Virus record (IMG/VR): IMGVR_UViG_3300032322_002561
Span: 62,001 to 126,000 of that record
Reading direction: 5' to 3' (one strand)
Length of the DNA: 64,000 bases
Made by a program: the position numbers and the translations under genes. Shown in pieces: positions 7,073 to 62,253 of this stretch. Each line of letters begins with the position of its first letter. Position 1 is the first letter of the stretch. The notes beneath the pieces are model-generated. The model did no database searches. It was not told the DNA's origin and was given only the letters and a program-made list of their open reading frames with translations.

Positions 7073-9073
7073 ATGCAAGATATTGTCCTTTTCTCTGTGC
7101 CGTACATAGAGCCAACCGCGCCGTCGGCTGGTCCTGCTCTCTTGAAGGGATATTTGGTGACTCAAGGATTTGCTGTCACAGCCTACGACTGGAACGTGGA
7201 GTTCAAAAAACACATCAACGATCCAACTCTGTACGGAGAATTTATAGCTTATTGGACCGGTGGCAACAAAACGGCCATGAGCAAACACAGTCTCAAACGC
7301 TATCATGATTTTTTGGAAGACTACGCTAAAAAATTTGCTGAAATCAAAACTAGATGGTTGGGGTTTGGTGTGTTTTCAGACCACAGTAGGCAGTGTTTAT
7401 TTGATCTGTTGACTCATCTCAAGCAACAAGACTTAGGAACAACAAGAATTGTGGTTGGTGGACATGGTTTAGATGTGGTATATTTGGACAGTATTTCACA
7501 CCTGATTGATGCATACATTCTAGGAGAAGGTGAGATAGCTCTCAGAGAATTATTGCGCGAAAATTTTTCGTACCCTGGCATCAATAGTGCTTCGGTTCAA
7601 ATTGATGATTTAGATCAACTTGGTTATGCTGACTACAGTGATTATGATTTAACCAATGGATATGATCTTTGGTATGATTCGCCCATGATCCAAATCACTG
7701 GCAGTAGAGGTTGTGTTCGTAGTTGCAGTTTCTGTGAGGTTCCAAGTATTTGGAAAAAATATAGATACAGGTCTGGAACCAGTTTGGCAAACGAGATCAT
7801 AACCAATCACGAAAAAACCGGCATCAGACATTTTTATTTCACCGACAGTTTGATAAACGGCAATGTCAAACAACTGATGGAAATGATGTCTATACTGACA
7901 AAGTACAAGCAGGACACTGGATCTGATCTTACCTGGGGAGGTCAGTGGATTTCTAGACCACAAAAAGGTCTACCCAAAGACTATTACAAGTTGATCAAAA
8001 GCAGTGGCGGTTTCAATTTGTCTATAGGTGTTGAAACCGGCAGTGATGCAGTGCGAGAGCACATGAAGAAAGGTTTTACCAATCAAGACCTTGATCTAGA
8101 AATGGAACAGTTCAGCCGTCACGGTATAAGATGTGGTTTTTTCATTTTACTAGGCTATCCCACCGAAACCGAAAAAGATTTCAAAGATACTCTGCGTATG
8201 TTCAAACGTTACACAAAATATGTGGCAGATGGAACTCTTATTGGTGTAGCAATTGGTAATGGATATTTTGCAGGTGCAAAAACACCCATAATCTTGGAAG
8301 GTCAGGAAGTCAAATATCTTGACAACAACAATTCAGTCAAATGGGTGTCCACTACAACCAACAGCAATTTCATGGAAAATATTCGACGCAGATTGATCGC
8401 ACAAAAAGTATTAAACAGTCTAAAATGGCCCTCGTCCAATATTGAATATGAACTGAGAGGTGTTATCAGCAACAGCAATCTGTATTTTGACAAACAAGAT
8501 AAACCTTTGGTAGAAGAACTGATTCGCAACAAAAATCTTGAACCTGACCAGGAATTTTTAGCCGAAATTGAGCCACATGCTTATGAAATCAGCGTGACTC
8601 TACTTGGGGTGGCAGGTGAAACTGATCCCGTGGTTGACATACAAATAAACAATGTAAAATATCAAAATCTTCTGGTGCAGGGACTACAAACTTTTACTTT
8701 TAAAGTTGACCAAGCACGCAAAAGAAATCTGGTCAAAATTGCCTTGGTCAACAAAACTAACTTGGACACAGTGCTACAACATGGTCAAATAGTCAAAGAC
8801 AAACATGTAAAAATTGAAAATTTAACCATTCACGGCAGCAGGTTTGCCCAACCTTTTTTACTCATGCAGGGCAAAGTAAAAACCAAGGCCGCGGGCTGGC
8901 AAGCGTATCGAGATGGTCTGTATGTCCAGGATGATTGTTACAGTTTATATTTTGAAAATCCTGTTCATCCTTATTTCATCAAGAAAAACAAATACTACTT
9001 TGAAACTAGGAATCAATTTGCTAAAGACATGTTACAAAAGGTCACAAATCTTTTTCATGATTTTGTAAATTAA
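7073..9073 (+). CDS. B12-binding radical SAM protein
   Basis: VVGG, GEGE, SRGCVRSCSFC (CxxxCxxC), GVETGS, GYPTET. Confidence 0.85.
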   Translation: MQDIVLFSVPYIEPTAPSAGPALLKGYLVTQGFAVTAYDWNVEFKKHINDPTLYGEFIAYWTGGNKTAMSKHSLKRYHDFLEDYAKKFAEIKTRWLGFGVFSDHSRQCLFDLLTHLKQQDLGTTRIVVGGHGLDVVYLDSISHLIDAYILGEGEIALRELLRENFSYPGINSASVQIDDLDQLGYADYSDYDLTNGYDLWYDSPMIQITGSRGCVRSCSFCEVPSIWKKYRYRSGTSLANEIITNHEKTGIRHFYFTDSLINGNVKQLMEMMSILTKYKQDTGSDLTWGGQWISRPQKGLPKDYYKLIKSSGGFNLSIGVETGSDAVREHMKKGFTNQDLDLEMEQFSRHGIRCGFFILLGYPTETEKDFKDTLRMFKRYTKYVADGTLIGVAIGNGYFAGAKTPIILEGQEVKYLDNNNSVKWVSTTTNSNFMENIRRRLIAQKVLNSLKWPSSNIEYELRGVISNSNLYFDKQDKPLVEELIRNKNLEPDQEFLAEIEPHAYEISVTLLGVAGETDPVVDIQINNVKYQNLLVQGLQTFTFKVDQARKRNLVKIALVNKTNLDTVLQHGQIVKDKHVKIENLTIHGSRFAQPFLLMQGKVKTKAAGWQAYRDGLYVQDDCYSLYFENPVHPYFIKKNKYYFETRNQFAKDMLQKVTNLFHDFVN

Positions 9074-9362
9074 GATATCTAAGCACAAACCAAGTCTGTG
9101 CGGCTTCGCTGTAGAAATCCAAGTGAACTTGATCTTCATAGTGATAGCGGTGATTCCAACCTTCGCTTTTCATGATTTCCCACTCGGGTTCTGGATGTGG
9201 TACTAGACCTTTGTGCCTGCGTATGGTAAATCCCAACTCACGCTTGCAAACAAAACTGATGGCAATCTTGGGACCAAAGTCTTCAACTAGCTGAGCCTGC
9301 AGATCACTCCACTCTTCGGGTCTGTGAAATATGATCAAGTTTTTCTTTATCGTTACCTTCAT
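9042..9362 (-). CDS. Small hypothetical protein (paralog array)
   Basis: C-terminal FYSEAAQTWFVLRY. Confidence 0.65.
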   Translation of the reverse strand: MKVTIKKNLIIFHRPEEWSDLQAQLVEDFGPKIAISFVCKRELGFTIRRHKGLVPHPEPEWEIMKSEGWNHRYHYEDQVHLDFYSEAAQTWFVLRYLNLQNHEKDL

Positions 9363-9676
9363 GCGCCAAACTTCAACAAGAACAAAGTGTGCTTTTGCTC
9401 ATCCAAGATTCTATACTTCAAATCCACACCCTCGGGTTGAATGGTCATTTCTATACCATAGTTTTCTCGAAGATACTCTTGGAACTCCTGTCTCACAGGA
9501 TTGTCGCTTTGATCCCATTCCTGTTTAACGGCACGCAGACGGAGATAATATGTGCTATCCTTACCTACTATGGTGTCAATCCTGGCCGCCGGAGTAGCAT
9601 AGTATTCATCTTGGGCCTGATCTGTCAAGCGTTTGGCAAATGCCTTTACACGAGTTGCGATGTCGTTTTTACTCAT
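9359..9676 (-). CDS. Small hypothetical protein (paralog array)
   Basis: C-terminal ILDEQKHTLFLLKFG. Confidence 0.65.
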   Translation of the reverse strand: MSKNDIATRVKAFAKRLTDQAQDEYYATPAARIDTIVGKDSTYYLRLRAVKQEWDQSDNPVRQEFQEYLRENYGIEMTIQPEGVDLKYRILDEQKHTLFLLKFGA

Positions 9677-9950
9677 CCTCCCACCATTTGATAGTTTTAG
9701 CTCGAAGCTTGACCATAGTAAACTCTTTGCGATCTACTTGTCCACGATATATACCCCAGGCCGGTTTGACCAAGTAAACACCATTGGCATTTTCCAACCA
9801 TACTCGGCGACTGTGGGACATGAAATCATCGTGGGTCTTAAAACACATCCTGCCACCTTCAGCCGGTGAGCAGTTGGGCATGCACCACAAGTGCCATCCT
9901 TCGCGGAAGGCCTTGTCTGTGCGCTCGTCTAATTCATAGTAATAATTCAT
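9669..9950 (-). CDS. Small hypothetical protein (possible paralog array member)
   Basis: C-terminal VDRKEFTMVKLRA. Confidence 0.6.
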   Translation of the reverse strand: MNYYYELDERTDKAFREGWHLWCMPNCSPAEGGRMCFKTHDDFMSHSRRVWLENANGVYLVKPAWGIYRGQVDRKEFTMVKLRAKTIKWWEDE

Positions 9951-9959
9951 TTAAACTAA

Positions 9960-10739
9960 TTATAAGGACCATTTATAGATATTATTAATGTCTAATGGAA
10001 CAGATTTAATAGATTCTGAGTTGTAAAGTCGCAAAATCATTCTTCTATGCTTCTGTGGATAGGTTCCGAGCATTTGATCTATTTCATCTGATACAAATTG
10101 CGGTATTGGAGTTGTTTGGGATACTATATCTTGATAATCTGGCCAAGATTCTCCTCGGATGGCCAAATAATCCTCATAGGTCAAATATTTAGGTTCAATT
10201 TTAACTTTTTGTCCATAACAATGAACCCAGTCGCATTCAAAACCAAATATTCTGGCAGAATTTATAATCCATGATAAATTTGGAGTTCCGTTGGGAATTA
10301 TTTTACAATTTCCGTTCCACCCATGTAATACATTGTCTGTGGTTTCAAAAGTCCAAAACATTTCTGGATTGGCGGTCTCTGGTCCAAATACAGTTTCAAA
10401 CAAAACATGTTCAATGTTTGGTTTTAGAATATAAGAAAAAAATCTAAAATGATCAAATAAGTGATACAACACTCCAAAGCAAGTTATAGTTTGACTTTTG
10501 TTAACCAACGGCGTTAATATATCAGGATTGGTTATGTCTCCAACAACAAAATCTACGTTTCCTGTAATTTTTTCTTTGGCTTGACTGATTAATTCGTCTC
10601 TAATCTCTACAGCATATACATGTTTGGCATTATTTTTTAAAATTAAATCGGTCGATTCGCCGGTATGACAGGCCAAATCTAATACAATTTTATTTTGTAA
10701 AATTTTATTATTAATTTTTAGATATTCTATTTTGTGCAT
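9960..10739 (-). CDS. Class I SAM-dependent methyltransferase
   Basis: VLDLACHTG, AVEIR, CFGVLYHL; AT-rich gene. Confidence 0.8.
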   Translation of the reverse strand: MHKIEYLKINNKILQNKIVLDLACHTGESTDLILKNNAKHVYAVEIRDELISQAKEKITGNVDFVVGDITNPDILTPLVNKSQTITCFGVLYHLFDHFRFFSYILKPNIEHVLFETVFGPETANPEMFWTFETTDNVLHGWNGNCKIIPNGTPNLSWIINSARIFGFECDWVHCYGQKVKIEPKYLTYEDYLAIRGESWPDYQDIVSQTTPIPQFVSDEIDQMLGTYPQKHRRMILRLYNSESIKSVPLDINNIYKWSL

Positions 10740-37723: not shown

Positions 37724-38818
37724 TTAAAATAAATCAATCTGCTCCCATGGCAATGTGTCTTTGCCAAAATGACCATAATTGGTTGTAGAACTGTAAATGG
37801 GGCGGAATAGGTCAAATCGCTTGATAATGCCTGCTGGAGTAAGATCTACATTGTCTTGCACCCACTGTGTCAGCGCACGACTGTCGCCGTTGCTGTCAAT
37901 GTAGAAACTCATGGGCTGAGCTAGACCAATAGCGTAACTGATCTGACATGTGGCCCAGTCTGCACGACCCGATGCCACAATATTCTTGGCAAGATATCGC
38001 ATCATGTATGCGGCACTTCGGTCCACCTTGGTGGGATCTTTACCACTGAATGCACCACCACCATGTGGTGCGTACCCACCATAGGTGTCCACAATGATCT
38101 TGCGTCCGGTCAAGCCCGTGTCACCATCGGGCCCGCCAATGACAAATCTACCAGTTGGATTGATATGAAACTCGGTTTGATCATCTACCAATTGACTTGG
38201 TAACGTATTGCGAATAATATGTTCTACAGTTTTTCTTACTGTTTCAATATCAACTTCGTTTTCATGCTGAGTTGAACAAACTACCTTGGCTATGCGCACA
38301 GGCTTGTTGGTGTCGTCGTATTCAAATGTAACTTGTGCCTTGGCATCCGGACCCAACCAACTTATAACACCGTGTTTTCGTACATCAGTTAAGGCATGTA
38401 AAATTTCATGGCTCCAGTAAATTGCGCTGGGCATAAATGCTTTGGTTTCTTTGCAGGCATAGCCAAACATCAAGCCTTGATCACCGGCACCAAATGTATC
38501 GGTTCCTAGTGCAATGTCGGCACTTTGACCATGCATGAGGTTTGTGATTTCTAGTGTGCGCCAGTCAAATCCGGCCTGTTCGTAACCAACGTCCTTGACA
38601 ACCTTGCGAACTGCTGAATCAACTTCTTGAGCATGCAACACCCCTTTGTATTCGCCAGCTACTACCACTCGATTTGTGGTCACCAAGGTCTCGCATGCAC
38701 ATCTAAGCGCCGGATCTTGCTTGGTCATGACAAGATCAAGTACTGCATCACTGATGGCATCGGCCACTTTGTCTGGATGACCTTCGCTAACGCTTTCACT
38801 TGTAAACAAATAACTCAT
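37724..38818 (-). CDS. metK: S-adenosylmethionine synthetase
   Basis: FTSESVSEGHPDK, GAGDQG, GGGAFSGKD. Confidence 0.97.
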   Translation of the reverse strand: MSYLFTSESVSEGHPDKVADAISDAVLDLVMTKQDPALRCACETLVTTNRVVVAGEYKGVLHAQEVDSAVRKVVKDVGYEQAGFDWRTLEITNLMHGQSADIALGTDTFGAGDQGLMFGYACKETKAFMPSAIYWSHEILHALTDVRKHGVISWLGPDAKAQVTFEYDDTNKPVRIAKVVCSTQHENEVDIETVRKTVEHIIRNTLPSQLVDDQTEFHINPTGRFVIGGPDGDTGLTGRKIIVDTYGGYAPHGGGAFSGKDPTKVDRSAAYMMRYLAKNIVASGRADWATCQISYAIGLAQPMSFYIDSNGDSRALTQWVQDNVDLTPAGIIKRFDLFRPIYSSTTNYGHFGKDTLPWEQIDLF

Positions 38819-38832
38819 GCTATCTCCATTTA

Positions 38833-39063
38833 TTAATCTTTTAACTGCCAAATCAAATGCTCGTATCGATCATGCCAGTGAGTTTCTACCGCATCCGATC
38901 CGGGTCCAGTCCATACAGCACGGCCACGATAGGCCAAGGTTCCTGGCCATAACATTTTGTTGCTTATTATGCATCTTCGCGGCCAGGTTATTCTGCGCAA
39001 CTCCCATTGTGCTCTAATGTAAAAATATCCATCACGCCTGTCTATTTTTTCTGGTATAGGCAT
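38833..39063 (-). CDS. Hypothetical protein
   Basis: 76 aa ORF in operon. Confidence 0.6.
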   Translation of the reverse strand: MPIPEKIDRRDGYFYIRAQWELRRITWPRRCIISNKMLWPGTLAYRGRAVWTGPGSDAVETHWHDRYEHLIWQLKD

Positions 39064-39069
39064 GTGTTT

Positions 39070-39333
39070 TTAAATCCAACCGCCGGCTCTGGCGATGCCC
39101 ACGATGCCCACCAAGATCCAGAAGGCGTTGAGCAAGGTATAGGCCCGGTCTTTTTTGAGCATGGCACAATAGGTCAGCAAAATGGCATCAGCGGTGTTGA
39201 CCAGCCATACCAACATGAACGGACTGGCCGGTCCCAACCAAGATACCAGAGTGAAACAGAAGATACGCATGACGACGCCTGCCATCTCCAACTGTGAAAT
39301 ATTATTTTTTATAAAATCGTGTATGATTTTCAC
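39070..39333 (-). CDS. Small membrane protein
   Basis: Three hydrophobic segments. Confidence 0.65.
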   Translation of the reverse strand: MKIIHDFIKNNISQLEMAGVVMRIFCFTLVSWLGPASPFMLVWLVNTADAILLTYCAMLKKDRAYTLLNAFWILVGIVGIARAGGWI

Positions 39334-40182
39334 TTACTTGCCCCAGCCATTGCCCCACAAGTCCACATGCAACCTTGGACTGTACCAATAGCCGCGCTTG
39401 AGTGCTTCGTCGGCCACGTGAATTCTGTTGCCATCATACACGCTGACAACTCCGCCCACAGGCATCACAAAAACTGGACCTGCAAAGCCGCGCTCGCGAT
39501 ATGTTGCCACGGCACGATCCAATTCTTCAAAATCTTCCAGGCGTTCCACTACAAATTTCAAGTAGGTGACTCCGTGTAATTCATATTCCCACACGACATC
39601 GGGCTTGATAGCACTGTCCCATGTTTCACCTGACACACTCAACTTGGGGCTAACACTAAAAGTGATTTCACCAAACCAGTCGTCCAAGTAGTTGGCAAAT
39701 TCCCGGTGTAGTTCTTGAGTGCCATTGGTTTCAAATGTGATGTGTCTAAGTCCACGCTCGTGCAAGATGTCTAACAGCTCGGGATAGATTCGTTGCCAGC
39801 CCAACAGTGGTTCGCCGCCAGTGATCACAAGATGAACGGGATTTCCGTTCTTGAACTGCATCCACTGATTGTTGGGCAACAAACTGTGAATACGATCTGC
39901 CAATTCTGCAGCAGTGTATGTTGGACTTAGATGTTTAAAAGCCGGGTGCCATGACGCATAACTGTCGCAACCAGTGTCCACTAGTGGTAATTCTTCAAAC
40001 GTTTTGTAAAGATGCACTGACTTGGCAATTTCATCTGGCTCAGTAGTTTTCTCTCCAGGCTTACAACCAAATCCGGCACACTGAAAGTTGCAACCAAACA
40101 TGCGTAAGAAAATACTGGGCACGCCTACATAGCGACCTTCGCCTTGTGCTGAATAAAATATTTCACTGACTTTGAAATCCAT
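39334..40182 (-). CDS. queE: 7-carboxy-7-deazaguanine synthase (radical SAM)
   Basis: SEIFYSAQGEG..G.P..FLR.FGC, CDS, ITGGEP, ETNGT, SPKL, PRLH. Confidence 0.92.
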   Translation of the reverse strand: MDFKVSEIFYSAQGEGRYVGVPSIFLRMFGCNFQCAGFGCKPGEKTTEPDEIAKSVHLYKTFEELPLVDTGCDSYASWHPAFKHLSPTYTAAELADRIHSLLPNNQWMQFKNGNPVHLVITGGEPLLGWQRIYPELLDILHERGLRHITFETNGTQELHREFANYLDDWFGEITFSVSPKLSVSGETWDSAIKPDVVWEYELHGVTYLKFVVERLEDFEELDRAVATYRERGFAGPVFVMPVGGVVSVYDGNRIHVADEALKRGYWYSPRLHVDLWGNGWGK

Positions 40183-40190
40183 ACTTGTTC

Positions 40191-40919
40191 CTATAATCTT
40201 GTAACTGTACTTAGACCGCTTTGAGTCATTGTCAAATTCTTTGCCTCATTAGCAATTTTAACACGAAGTTTGCAATTTGTCATCCAACCTGGCAATACTG
40301 CATCCAAATACTGTAAATGTTCCAGCGGTGTTGGATGCGGATCTCCTTGATTGCGCCAACCTTGTGCAAATACCGTGCTTCTAAAACTGGGTAGCATGAT
40401 GTCTAAAGCATCTCGATAAACATTCAAGACATCTTGATCTGGTGTCTCTGTGTCATCAAATTGATGTACATTGCCAAGATCACACACGCTTAAAAACCGC
40501 CAAGTTGCACCAGTTTGTTCTAGCACTGTTTTGGCGGCTTGAATCATGGCCAAGTCTCTTATGAGCGAACCACGTTCGGTCACAGCCGCCCGCACATAGT
40601 CCTTGTTGTATATGGGACAGGATGTGATATTGCCCAAAGTCTGCCAACGATCGGTGTAGCGATCCTCACGCATGACATTGGTCCAACATACCAACACAGT
40701 ATCTGACTCGCCCAAACTATGACGTTGGTTGGCTTCAATCAGGCTGTTAAAGATAAAGTGATTGCCAGCACCACTTTGAGCCCAATTTTGGTAATGTGCA
40801 AATTGTGTGCCCAAAAGGTCAGCCCAAGTGGGCCAACGATAATTTGTAAAACTACATCCAAAAGTAAAAAGTCTTGAGCCTTTTACCTCCACCACTCCTC
40901 CCAGGGAAACACAATCCAC
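40191..40919 (-). CDS. SGNH-like protein
   Basis: FGCSFT..WPTW, GAGN, DPHPT; start uncertain. Confidence 0.6.
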   Translation of the reverse strand: MDCVSLGGVVEVKGSRLFTFGCSFTNYRWPTWADLLGTQFAHYQNWAQSGAGNHFIFNSLIEANQRHSLGESDTVLVCWTNVMREDRYTDRWQTLGNITSCPIYNKDYVRAAVTERGSLIRDLAMIQAAKTVLEQTGATWRFLSVCDLGNVHQFDDTETPDQDVLNVYRDALDIMLPSFRSTVFAQGWRNQGDPHPTPLEHLQYLDAVLPGWMTNCKLRVKIANEAKNLTMTQSGLSTVTRL

Positions 40920-41419
40920 ACATCCTTGTCTGCTTTGTTTATGGCCACAGCTGAATATGTGACATCCAGTTTGCTCTTGCTTGACTCATTGTCATACAAG
41001 CATGCCACACGCACATTGTTGCCCCAGACTTCTTTCCAACGTTTGTCTTTGGGGAAACAACCGCTTTGCCAATCTTCTTTGATCCAGTTTAGTGTGGCGC
41101 CCGAATCGTTGATGTCATCTACAATCAAGATATTTTTACGTCCGTCTCCGCTGGCTTGCGGATCAAACTCTCTGTGACCATAGGCATCTTCAGCCATCCA
41201 TAAGTTGCTTTCTTGTTCAGCGCCATCTCGCAAGCTGACCTTGAGTGTTTCCATTCTGCAACCCAAGTACTGACTGATCAAGTTGGCCGGCACTAGACCG
41301 CCACGTGTTATACCAACCACATAGTCAGGCTGCCACTGGTCCCGGTGCAATTGTCTTAGAAGCTCTTGCACTTGCTTCTCCACGTCTTGCCACGTCAATG
41401 TTATTCGTTGTGTTGCCAT
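40883..41419 (-). CDS. Type I phosphoribosyltransferase (Gpt-like)
   Basis: VGITRGG, ILIVDDINDSGAT, WIVFPWE. Confidence 0.9.
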   Translation of the reverse strand: MATQRITLTWQDVEKQVQELLRQLHRDQWQPDYVVGITRGGLVPANLISQYLGCRMETLKVSLRDGAEQESNLWMAEDAYGHREFDPQASGDGRKNILIVDDINDSGATLNWIKEDWQSGCFPKDKRWKEVWGNNVRVACLYDNESSKSKLDVTYSAVAINKADKDVWIVFPWEEWWR

Positions 41420-43334
41420 GTGTTTCTACCGTTGCCTTTCCAAAATTTCTACGCCGTGCAAAATAAAACATTTCTAAAAAAGTAGGAAAACTCATGTTTT
41501 TGTCTTCGGGAAAATCTAGATTATACACTGTAGGCGATTCTTCCAAAGGCTGACCAAAAGTCAAGTAATCCCAGATATTGTAATCCAATTCCAAGGATTG
41601 TGGATATTGATCAATGTCTGGATATGCAATAAAATACTTGCGCTGAAACTTCATGACACTGTCCAACAGTTCCTTGGGCAAGTTATATTGTAACATAAAT
41701 CTGTATAAAAGGTCAAACACCTGATCGTATCTTGATTCTTCGTGCAGTTTTAATATGGTTCGGTGCATGAGGTTCCAACCATAAATTTCAATGCCCCCAA
41801 TGTCAGGATGGTCAATTTTGTCACTGCTCATCCAGTTTTGATTGTATTGTCTAGTATCCAGCATTTCTTTATGGAACCAGGAATCCTGCTGTATGAATTC
41901 AAATAAATCTTCATAGAATTGTGAGTAGTCAATATCCAGATATTGATAAACAAATCTGCTCAACAAAGTGCTCAGCCCATTGATATGAAAAGTGTTTATG
42001 AACCAAGAATACACTTGAGCATCCAGCATGGATTCATGTGGCATGTCCTTGGTGCCAGTGATGATTTCGATGCTTTCAATAATTTGTTCGTTTTTGTATG
42101 ATCCACTGAAGTAGTCAGTGACTCTGTTGCCAGTAATCTTAAAAAGTTTTCTTTGCAATAGATTCATTTCGGCATTTTCCAACAGTTGGGCCTGAAACAC
42201 CGTGAGTCCTGTGTGATTACCCATGCGGAACAATTTCCAAAAATTATCTTTCCAGGTCTGTAAACTTTCACCAGGCAAGCCAAGTATGAGTTCGGTATAG
42301 GTGGGAATGTTGCGCTGTTCACACAGTTCAAACACTTCTTCCAACTTGTTCATTTCCATGTTTTTACGACGAATGTTTTCCAGAACATCCACGTCCAAAC
42401 TCTGTACACTGAGTGTGAGACCCTGATTGAAGCCTGGTGCATTCAGTAGCTTGGTTATGATATCAACCACTTCACGTTTTTGATTCTTGGCCCAGGCCAC
42501 CGAGAAGGTCTTGGGAAATCCATAGCGTTCTTGTATTTCTATGATTTTATCTGCAATGAGATTGTCTCTGTCGGGGAACATGCCAAAGTTAGCATCGGTG
42601 ATTGAAATAAAACCCACACGGTGCTGTGCCATCCACTCAAGTTCCTCAAATACTCGATCCAAGCGATAGTGTTTGACCTTGTTGTAGGTCAAGCTGCCCC
42701 AGTCACAGAATGTGCAAGCAAATGGACATCCACGATTGGTTTCCAAGGTACCGTTCCACTCCACGTCGGGATTTTCTGCAATGATTTTGTCAAACACTCC
42801 GGTAAGATAGGGACTGGGTATGTCTTCAAGATTTTCTATGCGTTTGGCATCGCCTGTATTGATGGGTTCACCGTTGCGATTGATCAAGAGTCCTGGAATA
42901 TCGTCCCAGCAACGCTTTTCAAAGGCCTGTATTACTCGTTGAAAAGTTATTTCGCCCTCAAAACAAATAATCATGTCCATGTAGGGCTCTTTGCGAAAGA
43001 TATCAGGATCTGTGATGGCCGGCTCTGGCCCACCAAAAATTATCACACAGTCGGGATTGGCTGCTTTGACTGCACGAGCCACGGTGTAGTTGTACTGGTG
43101 ATTCCACACATAGGTACTAAAAGCCACCACATCGTTTTGAGCCAAGCGAGCCACCACATCATCTATGGCTTCACGCCGCCAAATCATGTCGGTGCACTCA
43201 AAATTTTCTCGAATCCATGGATCAGTGAGGGCATAGCTCCAAATCACTCCTGCGCTATAGGGCAAGTAGTGTGCATTCAGCTCTTTGGGTCCTTGTTGAA
43301 AATTGGGTTGTACCCAGGCAATCTTATAGGTCAT
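41325..43334 (-). CDS. B12-binding radical SAM protein
   Basis: LPYS, FGGP, ETNRGCPFACTFCDWG, ILGLPGE. Confidence 0.88.
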   Translation of the reverse strand: MTYKIAWVQPNFQQGPKELNAHYLPYSAGVIWSYALTDPWIRENFECTDMIWRREAIDDVVARLAQNDVVAFSTYVWNHQYNYTVARAVKAANPDCVIIFGGPEPAITDPDIFRKEPYMDMIICFEGEITFQRVIQAFEKRCWDDIPGLLINRNGEPINTGDAKRIENLEDIPSPYLTGVFDKIIAENPDVEWNGTLETNRGCPFACTFCDWGSLTYNKVKHYRLDRVFEELEWMAQHRVGFISITDANFGMFPDRDNLIADKIIEIQERYGFPKTFSVAWAKNQKREVVDIITKLLNAPGFNQGLTLSVQSLDVDVLENIRRKNMEMNKLEEVFELCEQRNIPTYTELILGLPGESLQTWKDNFWKLFRMGNHTGLTVFQAQLLENAEMNLLQRKLFKITGNRVTDYFSGSYKNEQIIESIEIITGTKDMPHESMLDAQVYSWFINTFHINGLSTLLSRFVYQYLDIDYSQFYEDLFEFIQQDSWFHKEMLDTRQYNQNWMSSDKIDHPDIGGIEIYGWNLMHRTILKLHEESRYDQVFDLLYRFMLQYNLPKELLDSVMKFQRKYFIAYPDIDQYPQSLELDYNIWDYLTFGQPLEESPTVYNLDFPEDKNMSFPTFLEMFYFARRRNFGKATVETHGNTTNNIDVARRGEASARASKTIAPGPVAA

Positions 43335-44197
43335 GCCTTATTTACTTGACTTAATTTTTGTTGTTTTTCAAAGTGAGTGTGTGGATTAGCAAACTGCACC
43401 ATTTGTTTGTTGACATCGTTTTGTGCAAGTTTTTCCCAGGGATCTTGTTTGTGCAAGAACACATTTTCAAAAAAAGTCATGTCCTGATTTCGCGTATTTT
43501 TCAAATAGGTAGCTATTTTGGCAGCATCCCTATGACGCAGTTCGATCATGGGTGCGCTGTGAAAGTCGTCTGGATCACTGGGTTTGCCCTCTAGCATGGC
43601 ACGACGTTTGAATGTTTCGTCACCGTTGTTGCCGGTCAAATCAAAGCGATCATGTTCAACCCACACCGGTATTCTCTGCCAGATATCCAACAAATAGGCC
43701 TGTTGACTCAACCAACCATCCTGCGTGGGGTGCGGGCTGATATACCCCAAGAGATCATACCATTCGCGTGGAACTATGGGGAATATACTGTAGGGATGAT
43801 CATTGTGAGTGTGGAAAGCCAAGAGCTTGAACTGACCGGTATAGCGAATGATTTCTGTGTCCCAGCCCTGAGTCTGCATGATGGCATCATCATTCCAGAT
43901 CACAATCCAATCACTGTCGGTCTTGGCTGCTAGTTTGTTGTTGTACACATTGAGTCTAATATAGCCCAAGGGATCAAACAACATGGCGGTGTAAACGGCC
44001 TTGACTGAATCAAGATAGGGTTTAATTGTGTCCGTGAAATATTTTTGTCCAATGGCATCATCACGGTCCAAGGCTATCATGATCTGCACACGATTGTAGT
44101 CGTCGGCGAGATCTATTAAACTTTGCAGACTGCGCATCAAGGCATCAGTTCGACCACGTGTGGGTAACAATATGGAAAGAGCATATTTGTGATTCAT
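43331..44197 (-). CDS. GT2/GT-A glycosyltransferase
   Basis: SILLPTRGR, WNDD. Confidence 0.75.
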   Translation of the reverse strand: MNHKYALSILLPTRGRTDALMRSLQSLIDLADDYNRVQIMIALDRDDAIGQKYFTDTIKPYLDSVKAVYTAMLFDPLGYIRLNVYNNKLAAKTDSDWIVIWNDDAIMQTQGWDTEIIRYTGQFKLLAFHTHNDHPYSIFPIVPREWYDLLGYISPHPTQDGWLSQQAYLLDIWQRIPVWVEHDRFDLTGNNGDETFKRRAMLEGKPSDPDDFHSAPMIELRHRDAAKIATYLKNTRNQDMTFFENVFLHKQDPWEKLAQNDVNKQMVQFANPHTHFEKQQKLSQVNKA

Positions 44198-44200
44198 TGA

Positions 44201-44791
44201 CTATCCTTCGTATATGGCACTGTTACCGGCATGCTCAAATACTTCTGCTGAACGTAATTTAACGCCTGATCCTACTGGATAGCGAGCCTTGTGTATGTTG
44301 CCGTTGGGGCAATGATAGTTGTTGCCTGTTTTAAAAATATGCAGTATGGTGGCCATTTCCTTATAGGCAAGTTCAGCAAACTTTTCGCAACCCACACCTT
44401 CCACGATCCTTAAATCACACACACCGCCTTGATCTTGCAATCCCAACTGGGCCATTTGTTTAAACATACCTTTGTGAGGATCATCATGTGCTACCACGAG
44501 AGTATGATCAAACATGTATTCGCTCCACTCTTTAAAGGCCTTGAGTCCACCAAAGTCCATGACCCAGTTGCGGTCATCCAGGGTTTCGCTTTCAAATACG
44601 AGTTTGATACCAATTGAGTATCCGTGTAGTAATGAGCAGTGACTATGTGTGCTACGCCATTGACGGAAGCAACAACTCAATCCGCGATCGTTGCCATATG
44701 TTTTTGTTGAAACGTATTTGGCTTTGGTCGTGCTTTCATTGAGCTGTCTTGTTGTTTCTTTTCCAATCTGTTCTTCTGTGTAATGAATCAT
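44201..44791 (-). CDS. queD: 6-carboxytetrahydropterin synthase
   Basis: HCSLLHGYS, WVMDFG, FDH, EKFA, VFE. Confidence 0.9.
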   Translation of the reverse strand: MIHYTEEQIGKETTRQLNESTTKAKYVSTKTYGNDRGLSCCFRQWRSTHSHCSLLHGYSIGIKLVFESETLDDRNWVMDFGGLKAFKEWSEYMFDHTLVVAHDDPHKGMFKQMAQLGLQDQGGVCDLRIVEGVGCEKFAELAYKEMATILHIFKTGNNYHCPNGNIHKARYPVGSGVKLRSAEVFEHAGNSAIYEG

Positions 44792-44797
44792 GCTGGT

Positions 44798-44864
44798 TCT
44801 CCTATGTTAATTTTAGCATAGGCTTGCAGAATTTGTAAAGCGGGATGAATGCCGGAAGACCGCT
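44798..44864 (-). promoter_or_regulatory. Structured 5' leader of queD (riboswitch-like candidate)
   Basis: AGCGG/CCGCT stem, then CCTATG/CATAGG hairpin overlapping the AGGAG RBS. Confidence 0.5.
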
Positions 44865-44871
44865 AAGATTA

Positions 44872-45240
44872 TTATTTAACTCGATAATTGCCACGCTCGG
44901 GAATAACATGGCGAACACCACCACGTGGATCTTCCATGTCACCTTTTCTGCGAGGAATGAGATGCACGTGCGGATACATAACTGTTTGCCCGGCAGCCTC
45001 TCCCCAGTTGATACCAATATTGAAACCATTCCACTCGCCAGAGTTGACTTGTGCCTGGCCCCATTTTAGTGCGTCAGCAAAACAATCTTCAATCACACCG
45101 TTGGCTGTGTACTTGGGCACAAACAACAAATGGCCTTCAGTAACTGGGTAACGATCACGATATACCACGACGTGGAAATCTTCACGTACTACATCATTCC
45201 AAGGTGCTATACCTAATCGTTGTGCTTCCTCAAGATCCAT
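44872..45240 (-). CDS. HIT-family nucleotide hydrolase
   Basis: GHLLFVPK, GFNIG..AAGQTV..PHVHLIPR. Confidence 0.9.
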   Translation of the reverse strand: MDLEEAQRLGIAPWNDVVREDFHVVVYRDRYPVTEGHLLFVPKYTANGVIEDCFADALKWGQAQVNSGEWNGFNIGINWGEAAGQTVMYPHVHLIPRRKGDMEDPRGGVRHVIPERGNYRVK

Positions 45241-45242
45241 GT

Positions 45243-45428
45243 TTATTTTGTTTTTTTTGTTACTACTTCAAGATCTAATCCCACAGCCAAGAGCCAGGAA
45301 TTAATGCGTTCGGCCACAACATCTTCGTGTATGGGATTATCCCACTGCATGTCTATGCGCACAGCAAGATCACCGGTTTCGACATGCAGATTTTGATATT
45401 GCAAATAGTAACTGACCTTGTTGCTCAT
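45243..45428 (-). CDS. Hypothetical protein
   Basis: 61 aa coupled ORF. Confidence 0.55.
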   Translation of the reverse strand: MSNKVSYYLQYQNLHVETGDLAVRIDMQWDNPIHEDVVAERINSWLLAVGLDLEVVTKKTK

Positions 45429-46264
45429 CTTGGTGCAAACTCCTGTTGCAGTTTGATATTGTCCATGAACTCTTTTTTAACACTTGAATCTGTGCTGAAC
45501 ACACCTCGTAACACTGTGGTTTGTGTCAGACTTGAGTGTGCCATGATACCACGATTTTCGCAACAACCGTGAGTGGCCTGGATATACACACCTACGTTGA
45601 CACTGTCTGTGGCTTTCATGATTTCTCGTGCGATGTCATTACATAGTTCTTCCTGAAGTGTACCACGACGAGCACACCATTGAGCAATACGAGTATACTT
45701 AGAAAGACCAATAAGTTTATTGGCAGCAATGATTCCGATATAAGCGACGCCGTTAACAGGCTGGTGATGGTGACTACACATACTACGCAACTCACTGCGT
45801 ACAACCAACATTCCTTCATATCTATCCTCCGAATCGTTAGGGAAAGCAGTAGCATCTGGTGCCGGCTCATAGCGTCCTGCCATGATTTCATTGAAATACA
45901 TCTTGGCCAAGCGACGTGCTGTACCTTGGCTGTTGGGATCTGTTTCGCGATCGATCAACAAAGTGTCTAGCACCTTTTCAAATGCTTCTGTGGCTTCATC
46001 GATTAATTTTTGTTTTTTGTTTTCATCTTCGATAAATTCACTGATGTTGTCTCCAGCCCAAAAGCGTTTGCCCGTGGCTCGCATGTTTTCACGAATCACT
46101 TGGCTCAGTGGGCGTCCTTCATCTAGATCAATCACGGCATCTTCATAACCAGGATGATATGGTGCCTCTGCCACAATACGGCTTTGTTGTAAGACATCGA
46201 ATGTTTTTTGGCTGGCATTATTTTTCACTGCGTTCTCTCTATCGTCACTGGTAAATGTTGTCAT
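45425..46264 (-). CDS. folE: GTP cyclohydrolase I
   Basis: SMCSHH, GLSKYTR, LQE, HGC..RG. Confidence 0.95.
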   Translation of the reverse strand: MTTFTSDDRENAVKNNASQKTFDVLQQSRIVAEAPYHPGYEDAVIDLDEGRPLSQVIRENMRATGKRFWAGDNISEFIEDENKKQKLIDEATEAFEKVLDTLLIDRETDPNSQGTARRLAKMYFNEIMAGRYEPAPDATAFPNDSEDRYEGMLVVRSELRSMCSHHHQPVNGVAYIGIIAANKLIGLSKYTRIAQWCARRGTLQEELCNDIAREIMKATDSVNVGVYIQATHGCCENRGIMAHSSLTQTTVLRGVFSTDSSVKKEFMDNIKLQQEFAPR

Positions 46265-46877: not shown

Positions 46878-47920
46878 GACATTCTACCTAGATCAACTGT
46901 GCCAAAAAATACATTGCTTAGGGCACGATTTGTATAACTGGCCATGTGTGCAGTTACACCGTGACGATGCAAGGCCGTAAGCACAGTGTCGTTTTCAACA
47001 TCCACAATGATATTTTTACTGTCAATAGACAACAGTCCAACTGGCATGCTGGGCCACAAATTAGACCAAGCTGGGTCTAAGAAATCAATTGCACGTTTGT
47101 ATTCGCTGTTGATGTCAGCAAAGGCATCTGGTACATCAGTGACCGTGACTATTTCCCAGTCTGGAAAAAATTTACCAAGATTTAGGTCTGGTTCGAAACA
47201 TAAAACCAGGCCTGGACAGGGTATCGCAAAAGATTTTTTCCAACGGCCTGAAGTTGTTATCACATGATTCTCACTGTCTGTAAAAATACTATCTATTTGC
47301 TGTTGTGCCCAGACCGCGTTTGATTCCTGTGCTTCAAAGTATCTGTGCGCACCTGCACATGTCACGCTAGACAACAACGTCATGGTGGCTTGATCAACTT
47401 CATGTACAGTGACATAATTTTCAAGTTCTGGCAGAACTTCGTTAAAGCACCCCCACTGACTGGTAAAGTCTTCCATGTGCTTTTGCAGACCATGTATTTT
47501 TTTACATTCTTCCTTGATGGCATCAGGTAAACCTTCAAAGTTTTTGTAATCATTGCAAGCGGGCCATGAAACGTCGGCAACATTTTTGTAAAATTCAGCA
47601 AAGTCAAATTCAATCAAGGGACAATAAAAGGCTTTGTCCGCTATAACAATCAAATTGTTTCTGGGACTATAACTGGCGGCCACATATTTTTTTTGCCACT
47701 GCGGTAGTACCGGATATCTTGTGCGAAATATCTCAACCTCGTGCAACCAAAGTTTGCCCAAGAGCCAGTTGGCATTTTGTTCAATTTCATTGGTGATCAA
47801 TTCAACACTGTTGCGTAATTCTATATCTGTAATATCAACAAAAAGTTCTGGCAGATATGATGTCCCTATCAGACAGGCCTTGAGTGGATCCCAGTCTTGA
47901 TATTTGGAAAATTTTATCAT
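46874..47920 (-). CDS. Divergent amidinotransferase-fold protein
   Basis: WDPLKACLIG, SPRN, terminal TVDL.R; catalytic Cys/His not evident. Confidence 0.55.
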   Translation of the reverse strand: MIKFSKYQDWDPLKACLIGTSYLPELFVDITDIELRNSVELITNEIEQNANWLLGKLWLHEVEIFRTRYPVLPQWQKKYVAASYSPRNNLIVIADKAFYCPLIEFDFAEFYKNVADVSWPACNDYKNFEGLPDAIKEECKKIHGLQKHMEDFTSQWGCFNEVLPELENYVTVHEVDQATMTLLSSVTCAGAHRYFEAQESNAVWAQQQIDSIFTDSENHVITTSGRWKKSFAIPCPGLVLCFEPDLNLGKFFPDWEIVTVTDVPDAFADINSEYKRAIDFLDPAWSNLWPSMPVGLLSIDSKNIIVDVENDTVLTALHRHGVTAHMASYTNRALSNVFFGTVDLGRMS

Positions 47921-49752
47921 GAGTCTATTCTTTCAATTCGATTTCTCAAGCAATCGCTTTTTCTCAAAACATGAAACCCCATGTCGTTGAATTTAGATAG
48001 ATCAATATTGGATTTTATCAAGTATTCTCTGTCTATTTTGTTCCATGTTTCAATGTCGTATTCTGATTTTACCTGGCGATTGATTTCTTGATTACTGTCA
48101 AACAAAAACATTTGCTGTAATAGTTTTATACTGTCAGGTATTTGTCCAAAATATTCTGCACAGTCTAAGGCCAACTCCACGCACTGATCTTTTACTCCAT
48201 GCAAGATTTCAAAACTCTTGGTATACCAAAATTCAAGACCCATGTTGTTGTTAAGGTGTCCTTGAGTAAGCAGTTGAACGATTTCCTTTTCCACTGCTTG
48301 ATATTCCTGTGCAGGCGCTGTGTTTGATGTCTGTAACAGATATTTAAGGCGACTGTAAAATTCAAAATAAGATATATTCAATACATTTCTACAAAAGCGT
48401 GAAATAAGTTGACTGTAACCTTGACAGTGAAAATTTTGTATCAGCCAGCAAAACAAATAACTTTGCACCATATCCTCAGTGGTCATGGTGCTGGTACTAA
48501 CAACTATGTCACCAAATTCTACAATACCGCTGTTGTCAGCGCCGGTATAACTTTGATGATTGTACATGCGCCTGGTTTTAATTTTGTATAAAAACATCTG
48601 AGTGCGATTTATTTCAGTGTTTTCTAAAATTTGCAATAAGGAAATGTTTATAAAATCGTGTTGTCCTGATTCCAATAATTGGCATAAGCCTTGTTCCCAA
48701 CTCTGTCTAGTTTCCAAAGGCAGTCCCAGAATCAAATCTGTATAAGTGGGCAATTTGTATTTGTTTGACAAGCTCAACATGCGTTCAAGATCATTTATCT
48801 CCATGTTGTCGCGTTTGATTACCTTGAGAGTGTCAGGGTTGAGTGTTTGTGTGGCAAGAGTAAGCCCACGAGCCAATTTACCAAATGCCTTGAGTATTTT
48901 AAACACATGCTCGCCACTGTTCTTGGGAAAATTTATGGCCACGTACTCTACAGCACTGTTGGCAAACTTTCGATTCATCATCTCAGCAATTTGTAAATCT
49001 CTTTCTTTCAATATGCCAAAATTTCCATCAGCTATGAAAACTGTGGTCACACAGTTATTTTGGACCAACCAGTCTAGTTCTTGTTCTATGCGTGACAAAT
49101 CAAAATTATATAACTTGCTGGCAGTCAGTGTGCCCCAATCACAGTAGGTGCATGCATAAGGACAACCTCGATTGGTTTCCAATGTTGCATCAAAGTACTC
49201 ATGTGAGTCTCTGTTTTTGACAATGTCATCAAACAGTCCCAACACATAAGGACTTGGATAGTCTAGGTCTTTTATTCTTGGCCCTTTTACCAATTTTTCC
49301 AGAGGTTGACCACTGGCAATTTTGCGCAGTATGTCAACAAAGGCTTGCTCACCTTCGTTGTTGACAATGACATCAATGTAGTCATATTCAGTATGACGGA
49401 TTCCGGTCTGAGGTCCACCAAATACTATGACACAATTGGGCCAGGCTTGTTTGATACACTTGGCCAACTCCAGGCAGTATTGTTCGTTCCAAACATAGAT
49501 ACTGAACGCACAAAGGTTTGGTGCCTTTAGTTCTTGCAACACTTCAGCAAGAGGCTGACGTTTATAGTGTAGTTTGACCAGGCGCCAATTTTGCACCACA
49601 TCGTCAAATTGTTGAGCATAGGCCCACAGACAACTCACAGAATATGGCAACCAAAATTGATACTTGTTTCCAAATTTGACACTGTATTGTGGTTGGAAAA
49701 GATGAATGGCACGTTGAGACATAGTCTCTGTAATTATCGTCGACGTCGTCAA
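47917..49752 (-). CDS. B12-binding radical SAM protein
   Basis: LPYS, FGGP, ETNRGCPYACTYCDWG; paralog of 41325..43334. Confidence 0.88.
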   Translation of the reverse strand: MTTSTIITETMSQRAIHLFQPQYSVKFGNKYQFWLPYSVSCLWAYAQQFDDVVQNWRLVKLHYKRQPLAEVLQELKAPNLCAFSIYVWNEQYCLELAKCIKQAWPNCVIVFGGPQTGIRHTEYDYIDVIVNNEGEQAFVDILRKIASGQPLEKLVKGPRIKDLDYPSPYVLGLFDDIVKNRDSHEYFDATLETNRGCPYACTYCDWGTLTASKLYNFDLSRIEQELDWLVQNNCVTTVFIADGNFGILKERDLQIAEMMNRKFANSAVEYVAINFPKNSGEHVFKILKAFGKLARGLTLATQTLNPDTLKVIKRDNMEINDLERMLSLSNKYKLPTYTDLILGLPLETRQSWEQGLCQLLESGQHDFINISLLQILENTEINRTQMFLYKIKTRRMYNHQSYTGADNSGIVEFGDIVVSTSTMTTEDMVQSYLFCWLIQNFHCQGYSQLISRFCRNVLNISYFEFYSRLKYLLQTSNTAPAQEYQAVEKEIVQLLTQGHLNNNMGLEFWYTKSFEILHGVKDQCVELALDCAEYFGQIPDSIKLLQQMFLFDSNQEINRQVKSEYDIETWNKIDREYLIKSNIDLSKFNDMGFHVLRKSDCLRNRIERIDS

Positions 49753-61972: not shown

Positions 61973-62253
61973 TATAGTACTACCAATTCGCCCAGATGAT
62001 TCACTGTGGCATCTCCGTATTCTACACGATAATTTTCAACCTGTAGACTGGCCTGGCGATCCAACAGTTCATATCGTATTGTGTACTTACCGGGCCAGGC
62101 TTCAATTTGAAAGCTCTCTTGCAGATAGACATTTTGCCAGGTCCAGGTGCGCTCGGTAAACAATTCGTCATCAACGAATGCACGGTACTGTGGCGGTGTC
62201 ACAGTCCAGGCACAGTGTACATCGCAAACTATCTTGACGAACTTTTTTGTCAT
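61972..62253 (-). CDS. Hypothetical protein
   Basis: TAAATA-N5-ATG start. Confidence 0.65.
   Translation of the reverse strand: MTKKFVKIVCDVHCAWTVTPPQYRAFVDDELFTERTWTWQNVYLQESFQIEAWPGKYTIRYELLDRQASLQVENYRVEYGDATVNHLGELVVL

Follow-up and report, generated by a model that had tools for sequence, protein, structure and literature searches.

A conserved, pseudoknotted RNA leader upstream of queD in aquatic phages is built like a small riboswitch with predicted translational ON logic

Introduction

The preQ1-I riboswitch (Rfam RF00522; types I-III) is an H-type pseudoknot of about 34 nt with a 5-bp, G/C-rich stem P1. The 3' strand of P1 is preceded by UC or AC, where the C is the specificity base and UC is the type I form (PMC11625349). 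A short A-rich L3 runs straight into the 3' strand of P2, which overlaps the Shine-Dalgarno (SD) sequence, and all known preQ1 riboswitches are OFF switches (PMC11625349). The opposite logic is found in translational ON riboswitches such as the Vibrio vulnificus add adenine riboswitch, where an aptamer helix and an RBS-sequestering helix compete for one strand and the folded aptamer, a three-way junction, frees the start site. Ribosome sites of phage DNA-modification genes can also be opened by proteins: in phage Mu, the ribosome site of mom is buried in a hairpin and is opened by the zinc-finger protein Com acting just upstream, without a pseudoknot. The Pistol self-cleaving ribozyme, which occurs frequently on phage DNA, is a hairpin whose loop pairs with a downstream strand after an AAA-containing linker.

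Here, we analyzed the leader of a queD gene in a jumbo phage. The window is a stretch of 64,000 nt (positions 62,001 to 126,000 of the 236-kb virus record IMGVR_UViG_3300032322_002561), and all coordinates refer to it unless stated otherwise. A sequence-only reading had proposed a riboswitch-like leader, in which a TAAATA motif is followed by an AGCGG/CCGCT stem, a TTACAAA linker and a CCTATG/CATAGG hairpin that sequesters AGG of the RBS, and in which loop GGC could pair with GCC at the hairpin base and free the RBS. It judged that the leader does not match preQ1-I and inferred a cis-regulator that senses a pterin, deazapurine or GTP, or binds QueD.

Results

Organization of the queD leader

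The genes at this locus run on the minus strand in the order folE, a 61-aa ORF, a HIT-family gene and, after an 80-nt gap, a T-fold gene that matches phage QueD. The features are as follows, all on the minus strand.

45425-46264: folE
45243-45428: 61-aa ORF between folE and the HIT gene, overlapping folE by 4 nt and matching no family
44872-45240: HIT-family gene; its TAA TAA stop ends 8 nt before P1
44860-44864: 5' strand of P1 (AGCGG)
44854-44859: L1 (TCTTCC)
44849-44853: 5' strand of P2 (GGCAT) in the P1 loop
44844-44848: L2 (TCATC); CA (44847-44846) can pair with TG (44828-44827)
44839-44843: 3' strand of P1 (CCGCT)
44826-44838: L3, 13 nt, opening with TTACAAA
44821-44825: 3' strand of P2 (AAGCC); its last two C are shared with the sequestor stem
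44801-44822: sequestor hairpin, CCTATG (44822-44817), a 10-nt loop and CATAGG (44806-44801)
44810-44839: promoter-like site, TTTACA, an 18-nt spacer and TG-n-TAAAAT
44799-44803: SD sequence AGGAG, 7 nt before the ATG at 44791
44201-44791: phage-type QueD (T-fold, 196 aa), the predicted regulated gene

Every element of the sequence-only reading is present in the DNA, and the observation is thereby confirmed. The P1 strands pair across a 16-nt loop, the sequestor hairpin covers AGG of the SD sequence, and loop GGC (44853-44851) is complementary to GCC (44823-44821). However, the TAAATA motif is only the end of the HIT-family ORF, i.e., a Lys codon followed by TAA TAA.

The QueD protein matched phrog_2389 with an E value of 3.5e-32, while its match to TIGR03367 was below the cut-off of that model. 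Its nearest solved structure is E. coli QueD. Compared with most homologues, which start at the equivalent of residue 23, the protein carries a 22-aa N-terminal extension (44723-44791) shared only with two close relatives (loci L002 and L020; L numbers denote collected loci).

The single sequence is not distinguishable from chance

The folding energy of the whole leader was no better than that of shuffled sequences (z 0.0 and -0.12 in two analyses). P1 alone gave z -0.43, and only the SD hairpin stood out mildly (-6.2 kcal/mol, z -2.09). This sequence by itself would therefore not be convincing.

Scans against Rfam 15 were run broadly and narrowly on the window (including a 121-nt scan of the leader at E up to 10), narrowly on loci L067 and L006, and at gathering level on 20 diverse loci. 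They returned only tRNAs and chance-level hits. Pistol, SAM-II/V, guanidine-III, preQ1-II and preQ1-III did not appear as real matches, and no sequence similarity to the add riboswitch, whose aptamer fold is unrelated, was found. The Pistol comparison is limited to gross topology, as the downstream P2/P3 helices of Pistol are missing and the leader is fixed at the RBS of one gene family.

The motif is conserved upstream of phage-type QueD

In contrast to the single sequence, comparison with relatives was decisive, as the same motif of about 45 nt recurs in them. A search of viral contigs with the QueD protein returned 80 loci, of which 75 carry the motif upstream of the gene, whatever lies further upstream. 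A degenerate DNA pattern found more copies in viral contigs. In 185,579 prokaryote genomes the pattern gave 8 hits, of which two are chance and six are real; all six lie upstream of the phage-type QueD gene on MAG contigs, and the one whose neighboring genes were examined (L085) is phage-like.

In total, about 200 loci (183 distinct) hold the motif. A QueD-family gene is called downstream in 173 of the 183, usually first and sometimes second behind an inserted ORF or a bacterial-type QueD; in L178, a bacterial-type and a phage-type QueD lie in tandem behind one leader. The other 10 had no QueD-family ORF called in the fetched DNA, at least some because the locus ends just after the motif. The proteins are 30-100% identical to that of the window, with a median of 46%. 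The 236-kb record contains exactly one copy of the motif. Sequencing runs holding this DNA are freshwater or lake metagenomes, and none of them is RNA. In another viral contig (L098), a cluster of seven tRNA genes (9035-10525) lies about 1 kb from the leader.

BLAST of two leaders against 50,697 phage records gave only chance hits, and a covariance model of the leader, run with filters off, found nothing next to QueD in four cultured phages. No isolate carrying the leader is in hand. Literature searches found no description of this motif.

Covariation supports a stem and a pseudoknot

Pairs were counted on an unguided MAFFT alignment of 91 distinct sequences. P1 was 98.9% paired, and its middle pair occurs as CG (47), AU (25) and UA (19). 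A pseudoknot P2 joins five loop bases to the five bases after an invariant UCUGC; it was 93% paired, and all five pairs show changes on both sides. Taken together, 87% of cells were paired compared to 77% in shuffles, 0 of 500 shuffles were as high, and sliding the partners lowered the pairing to 32-53%. A covariance model built from these sequences found all 55 held-out leaders and one previously missed (56 hits, 33-58 bits). In these, P1 was 100% and P2 92% paired, and P2 was extended by CA/UG, in which C:G becomes A:U in two sequences (L067 and L068). The GGC/GCC pairing of the sequence-only reading is the core of P2, although P2 of the window itself has one internal A-A mismatch.

The unpaired parts are also fixed, with about 15 positions strictly conserved. 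L1 varies in length but starts N-C-U, with C and U invariant in the protein-anchored set; L2 is U-C-A-Y-C; and L3 is N-U-A-N-A-A-A-Y-U-C-U-G-C, with a length of 13 nt in 144 of 144 sequences. Part of the apparent invariance in the pattern-collected loci was imposed by the search pattern, whereas the protein-anchored alignment gives the unbiased list. The last C of L2 (44844 in the window) was found in 144 of 144 sequences, preceded by U in 106, C in 22 and A in 16.

A leader peptide or overlapping ORF (44802-45029) was rejected because the variation is compensatory, not codon-like. Another register of P2, in which loop GGCAT of A-type leaders (the subtype of the window) pairs with ATGCT inside the sequestor arm, is not excluded. 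However, the proximal register covaries within A-type leaders (GGCG/CGCC, GGTG/CACC, GGCA/TGCC), and either register gives the same logic.

The 3' strand of P2 has a second partner at the ribosome-binding region

In every subtype, the 3' strand of P2, together with the next few bases, is also complementary to the ribosome-binding region. In most leaders, a 7-10 bp helix buries the start codon, for example TGTCATC with GATGGCA, TGCCATTG with CAATGGCA, AAGTCATC with GATGACTT, and TACCATATT with AATATGGTA. In a few leaders, the helix buries the SD sequence instead (TGTCTT with GAGACA). In the subtype of the window, the corresponding element is the CCTATG/CATAGG hairpin, which shares two C with P2 and is kept in all 48 A-type leaders. 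This stem never varies among A-type leaders, so it has no covariation of its own.

In the other subtypes, the second helix covaries. In anchored pair tables, the base before the ATG pairs as C:G (22 cases) or U:A (11 cases), with 0 of 2000 shuffles as high. RNAalifold independently predicted the same helix, with CG to UA and UA to AU swaps, and MFE folds of relatives show P1 together with the sequestor. The two pairings of the P2 strand exclude each other. Forming P2 should therefore free the ribosome site, which makes the leader a predicted translational ON switch; this logic is inferred from the mutually exclusive pairings.

Promoters and the terminator reading

The promoter-like site inside the leader of the window matches the sigma-70 consensus at 10 of 12 positions and has an extended -10. 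Of the 48 A-type leaders, 47 score at least 9 of 12 at this same position, with the -35 in L3 and TG-n-TATAAT in the sequestor loop, and 45 lack an upstream promoter. In contrast, 54 of 96 leaders of the other subtypes have a sigma-70 match of at least 9 of 12, usually ending 6-8 nt before P1, so that the RNA starts with the aptamer. The two architectures (loci L004-L209) sort cleanly with the type of sequestor helix. The transcription start site itself was not mapped.

These promoters raise the possibility that the region is only DNA-level punctuation in this window, with a terminator hairpin after the HIT gene followed by the queD promoter and no RNA function. This reading is very unlikely. 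No T-run follows P1 (TTTACAAA follows the stem), and the terminator scan reported nothing at 44839-44864. Pseudoknot covariation, including that within A-type leaders, cannot be explained by a promoter, and B-type leaders carry the same core with the promoter upstream of it.

Gene context

The window encodes a 7-deazapurine gene set (37724-46264, minus strand) that comprises FolE, phage QueD, a QueE-like radical SAM enzyme (39334-40182), a xanthine/guanine-PRTase-like protein (40883-41419) and MetK (37724-38851). No QueC and no TGT/DpdA were detected in the 236-kb record or in five near-complete leader-bearing jumbo genomes (records of 300-382 kb), although a divergent DpdA could have been missed. 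Synechococcus phage BUCT-ZZ01 has the same QueE-PRTase-QueD-FolE block. This hints at a nucleotide-level route rather than DNA base exchange. Two large radical-SAM-like ORFs with a CxxxCxxC motif (669 and 611 aa; 41325-43334 and 47917-49752, minus strand) flank the queD block, and neither has a PHROG match.

The phage-type QueD family (window 44201-44791; L215, 2498-2950) has C-x3-H-G-Y and F-R-Q-W where bacterial QueD has C-x3-H-G-H and H-R-L, so that two of the three zinc-binding His residues are replaced. This apparent loss turned out to be a trait of the whole phage-type family, including cultured phages with complete preQ0 clusters, and those phages lack the leader.

Discussion

Comparison with preQ1-I is the closest that can be drawn. 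The leader shares its H-type topology with a 5-bp G/C-rich P1, an invariant C directly before the P1 3' strand, mostly preceded by U as in type I, a tail that starts U-A-N-A-A-A, and a position before a queuosine or 7-deazaguanine pathway gene. On L006, the RF00522 model aligns partially over P1, L1, the end of L2 and UAUAAA, but scores only 11.2 bits against a gathering score of 39. It gave no hit on the leader of the window at E up to 10, none at the leader in the whole 236-kb record, and none at gathering level in the 20 diverse loci. The core is about 45 nt, L1 is 5-10 nt, P2 is 5-7 bp plus the CA/UG extension, and L3 carries six extra invariant bases (YUCUGC). The 3' strand of P2 is complementary to the SD or start region and not part of it, which gives the opposite logic, and the motif has been seen only on phage DNA. 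The review of preQ1 riboswitches lists no ON-type or phage-specific form (PMC11625349). It is thus very unlikely that the leader is an ordinary preQ1-I riboswitch that shuts queD off in the presence of preQ1, a ligand whose binding was not assayed.

In the explanation we favor, with moderate confidence, the leader is an RNA switch carried on the mRNA, with an aptamer-like core that folds as an H-type pseudoknot; stabilizing the pseudoknot would expose the ribosome site and turn queD translation on. In this view, the P1 loop carries a decoy of the start region, and in this phage the switch would act only on transcripts that read through from folE and HIT. A promoter inside the leader would give a second, unregulated transcript and would bypass the switch. 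Our analysis demonstrates the conservation, both helices, their mutual exclusion and the exclusive link to the phage QueD gene, whereas the nature of the trigger is inferred. That it is a small molecule bound in the pseudoknot is somewhat more likely than not. A guanine-like heterocycle is the best guess, such as a 7-deazaguanine intermediate, a pterin such as the QueD substrate, or a guanine nucleotide, based on the invariant C next to P1 and the preQ1-I-like layout; any single compound is unlikely. The motif would regulate only one gene family, so gene context cannot narrow the ligand. No binding or expression data exist, and no RNA-seq run holds this phage. ON control of a first committed biosynthetic step is also unusual.

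The same two-state RNA could instead be switched by a protein, where a phage or host factor, or QueD itself, would bind the conserved single-stranded bases and hold the pseudoknot, as Com does when it opens the mom leader. Strictly conserved unpaired bases fit a protein site as well as a ligand pocket, there is one copy per genome, always with one gene family, and ON logic is typical of phage translational activators. On the other hand, the motif stays nearly unchanged while QueD diverges to 30% identity, and it persists where another gene comes first after the leader, which argues against tight co-evolution with QueD. Nothing in the data identifies a protein partner, no candidate partner gene is conserved next to the motif, and the compact H-type fold, with a C beside P1 and an A-rich tail, is the layout of a known small-molecule aptamer. 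A protein activator is less likely but remains a serious rival. A leader without any effector, which would set translation through co-transcriptional folding order, temperature or mRNA stability, is unlikely. P2 is transcribed before its competitor, the nested state is the computed MFE, and no ligand is known, but such a role would not need about 15 invariant unpaired positions and a fixed 13-nt L3 across very diverse phages.

The interpretation of the sequence-only reading is thus partly supported. The leader is a conserved, structured cis-acting element, its GGC/GCC pairing is a real, covarying pseudoknot that competes with the helix hiding the ribosome site, and the statement that it is not preQ1-I holds at the level of the Rfam model. 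The proposed effectors (pterin, deazapurine, GTP or a protein) were not tested. The resemblance to preQ1-I in topology and key positions, the ON logic, the embedded promoter and the origin of TAAATA in the upstream stop had been missed.

A further, tentative possibility is a new riboswitch class, seen so far only on phage DNA, that reuses the preQ1-I pseudoknot fold with an enlarged pocket and inverted (ON) logic. It would sense a 7-deazapurine or pterin intermediate and gate a widespread 7-deazapurine pathway of aquatic jumbo phages, in which we found no QueC or DpdA-type transglycosylase but did find a purine phosphoribosyltransferase.

The leader would add a compact translational ON switch to the pseudoknot riboswitches, and would show how the preQ1-I scaffold can be rewired in logic and perhaps in ligand. 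In this view, the two promoter arrangements show how a phage can make regulated and unregulated transcripts of one gene from the same 70 nt. Because the motif is single-copy and tied to phage QueD, its ligand would report which intermediate these phages monitor, which gives a direct handle on a 7-deazapurine pathway whose end product in these jumbo phages is unknown.
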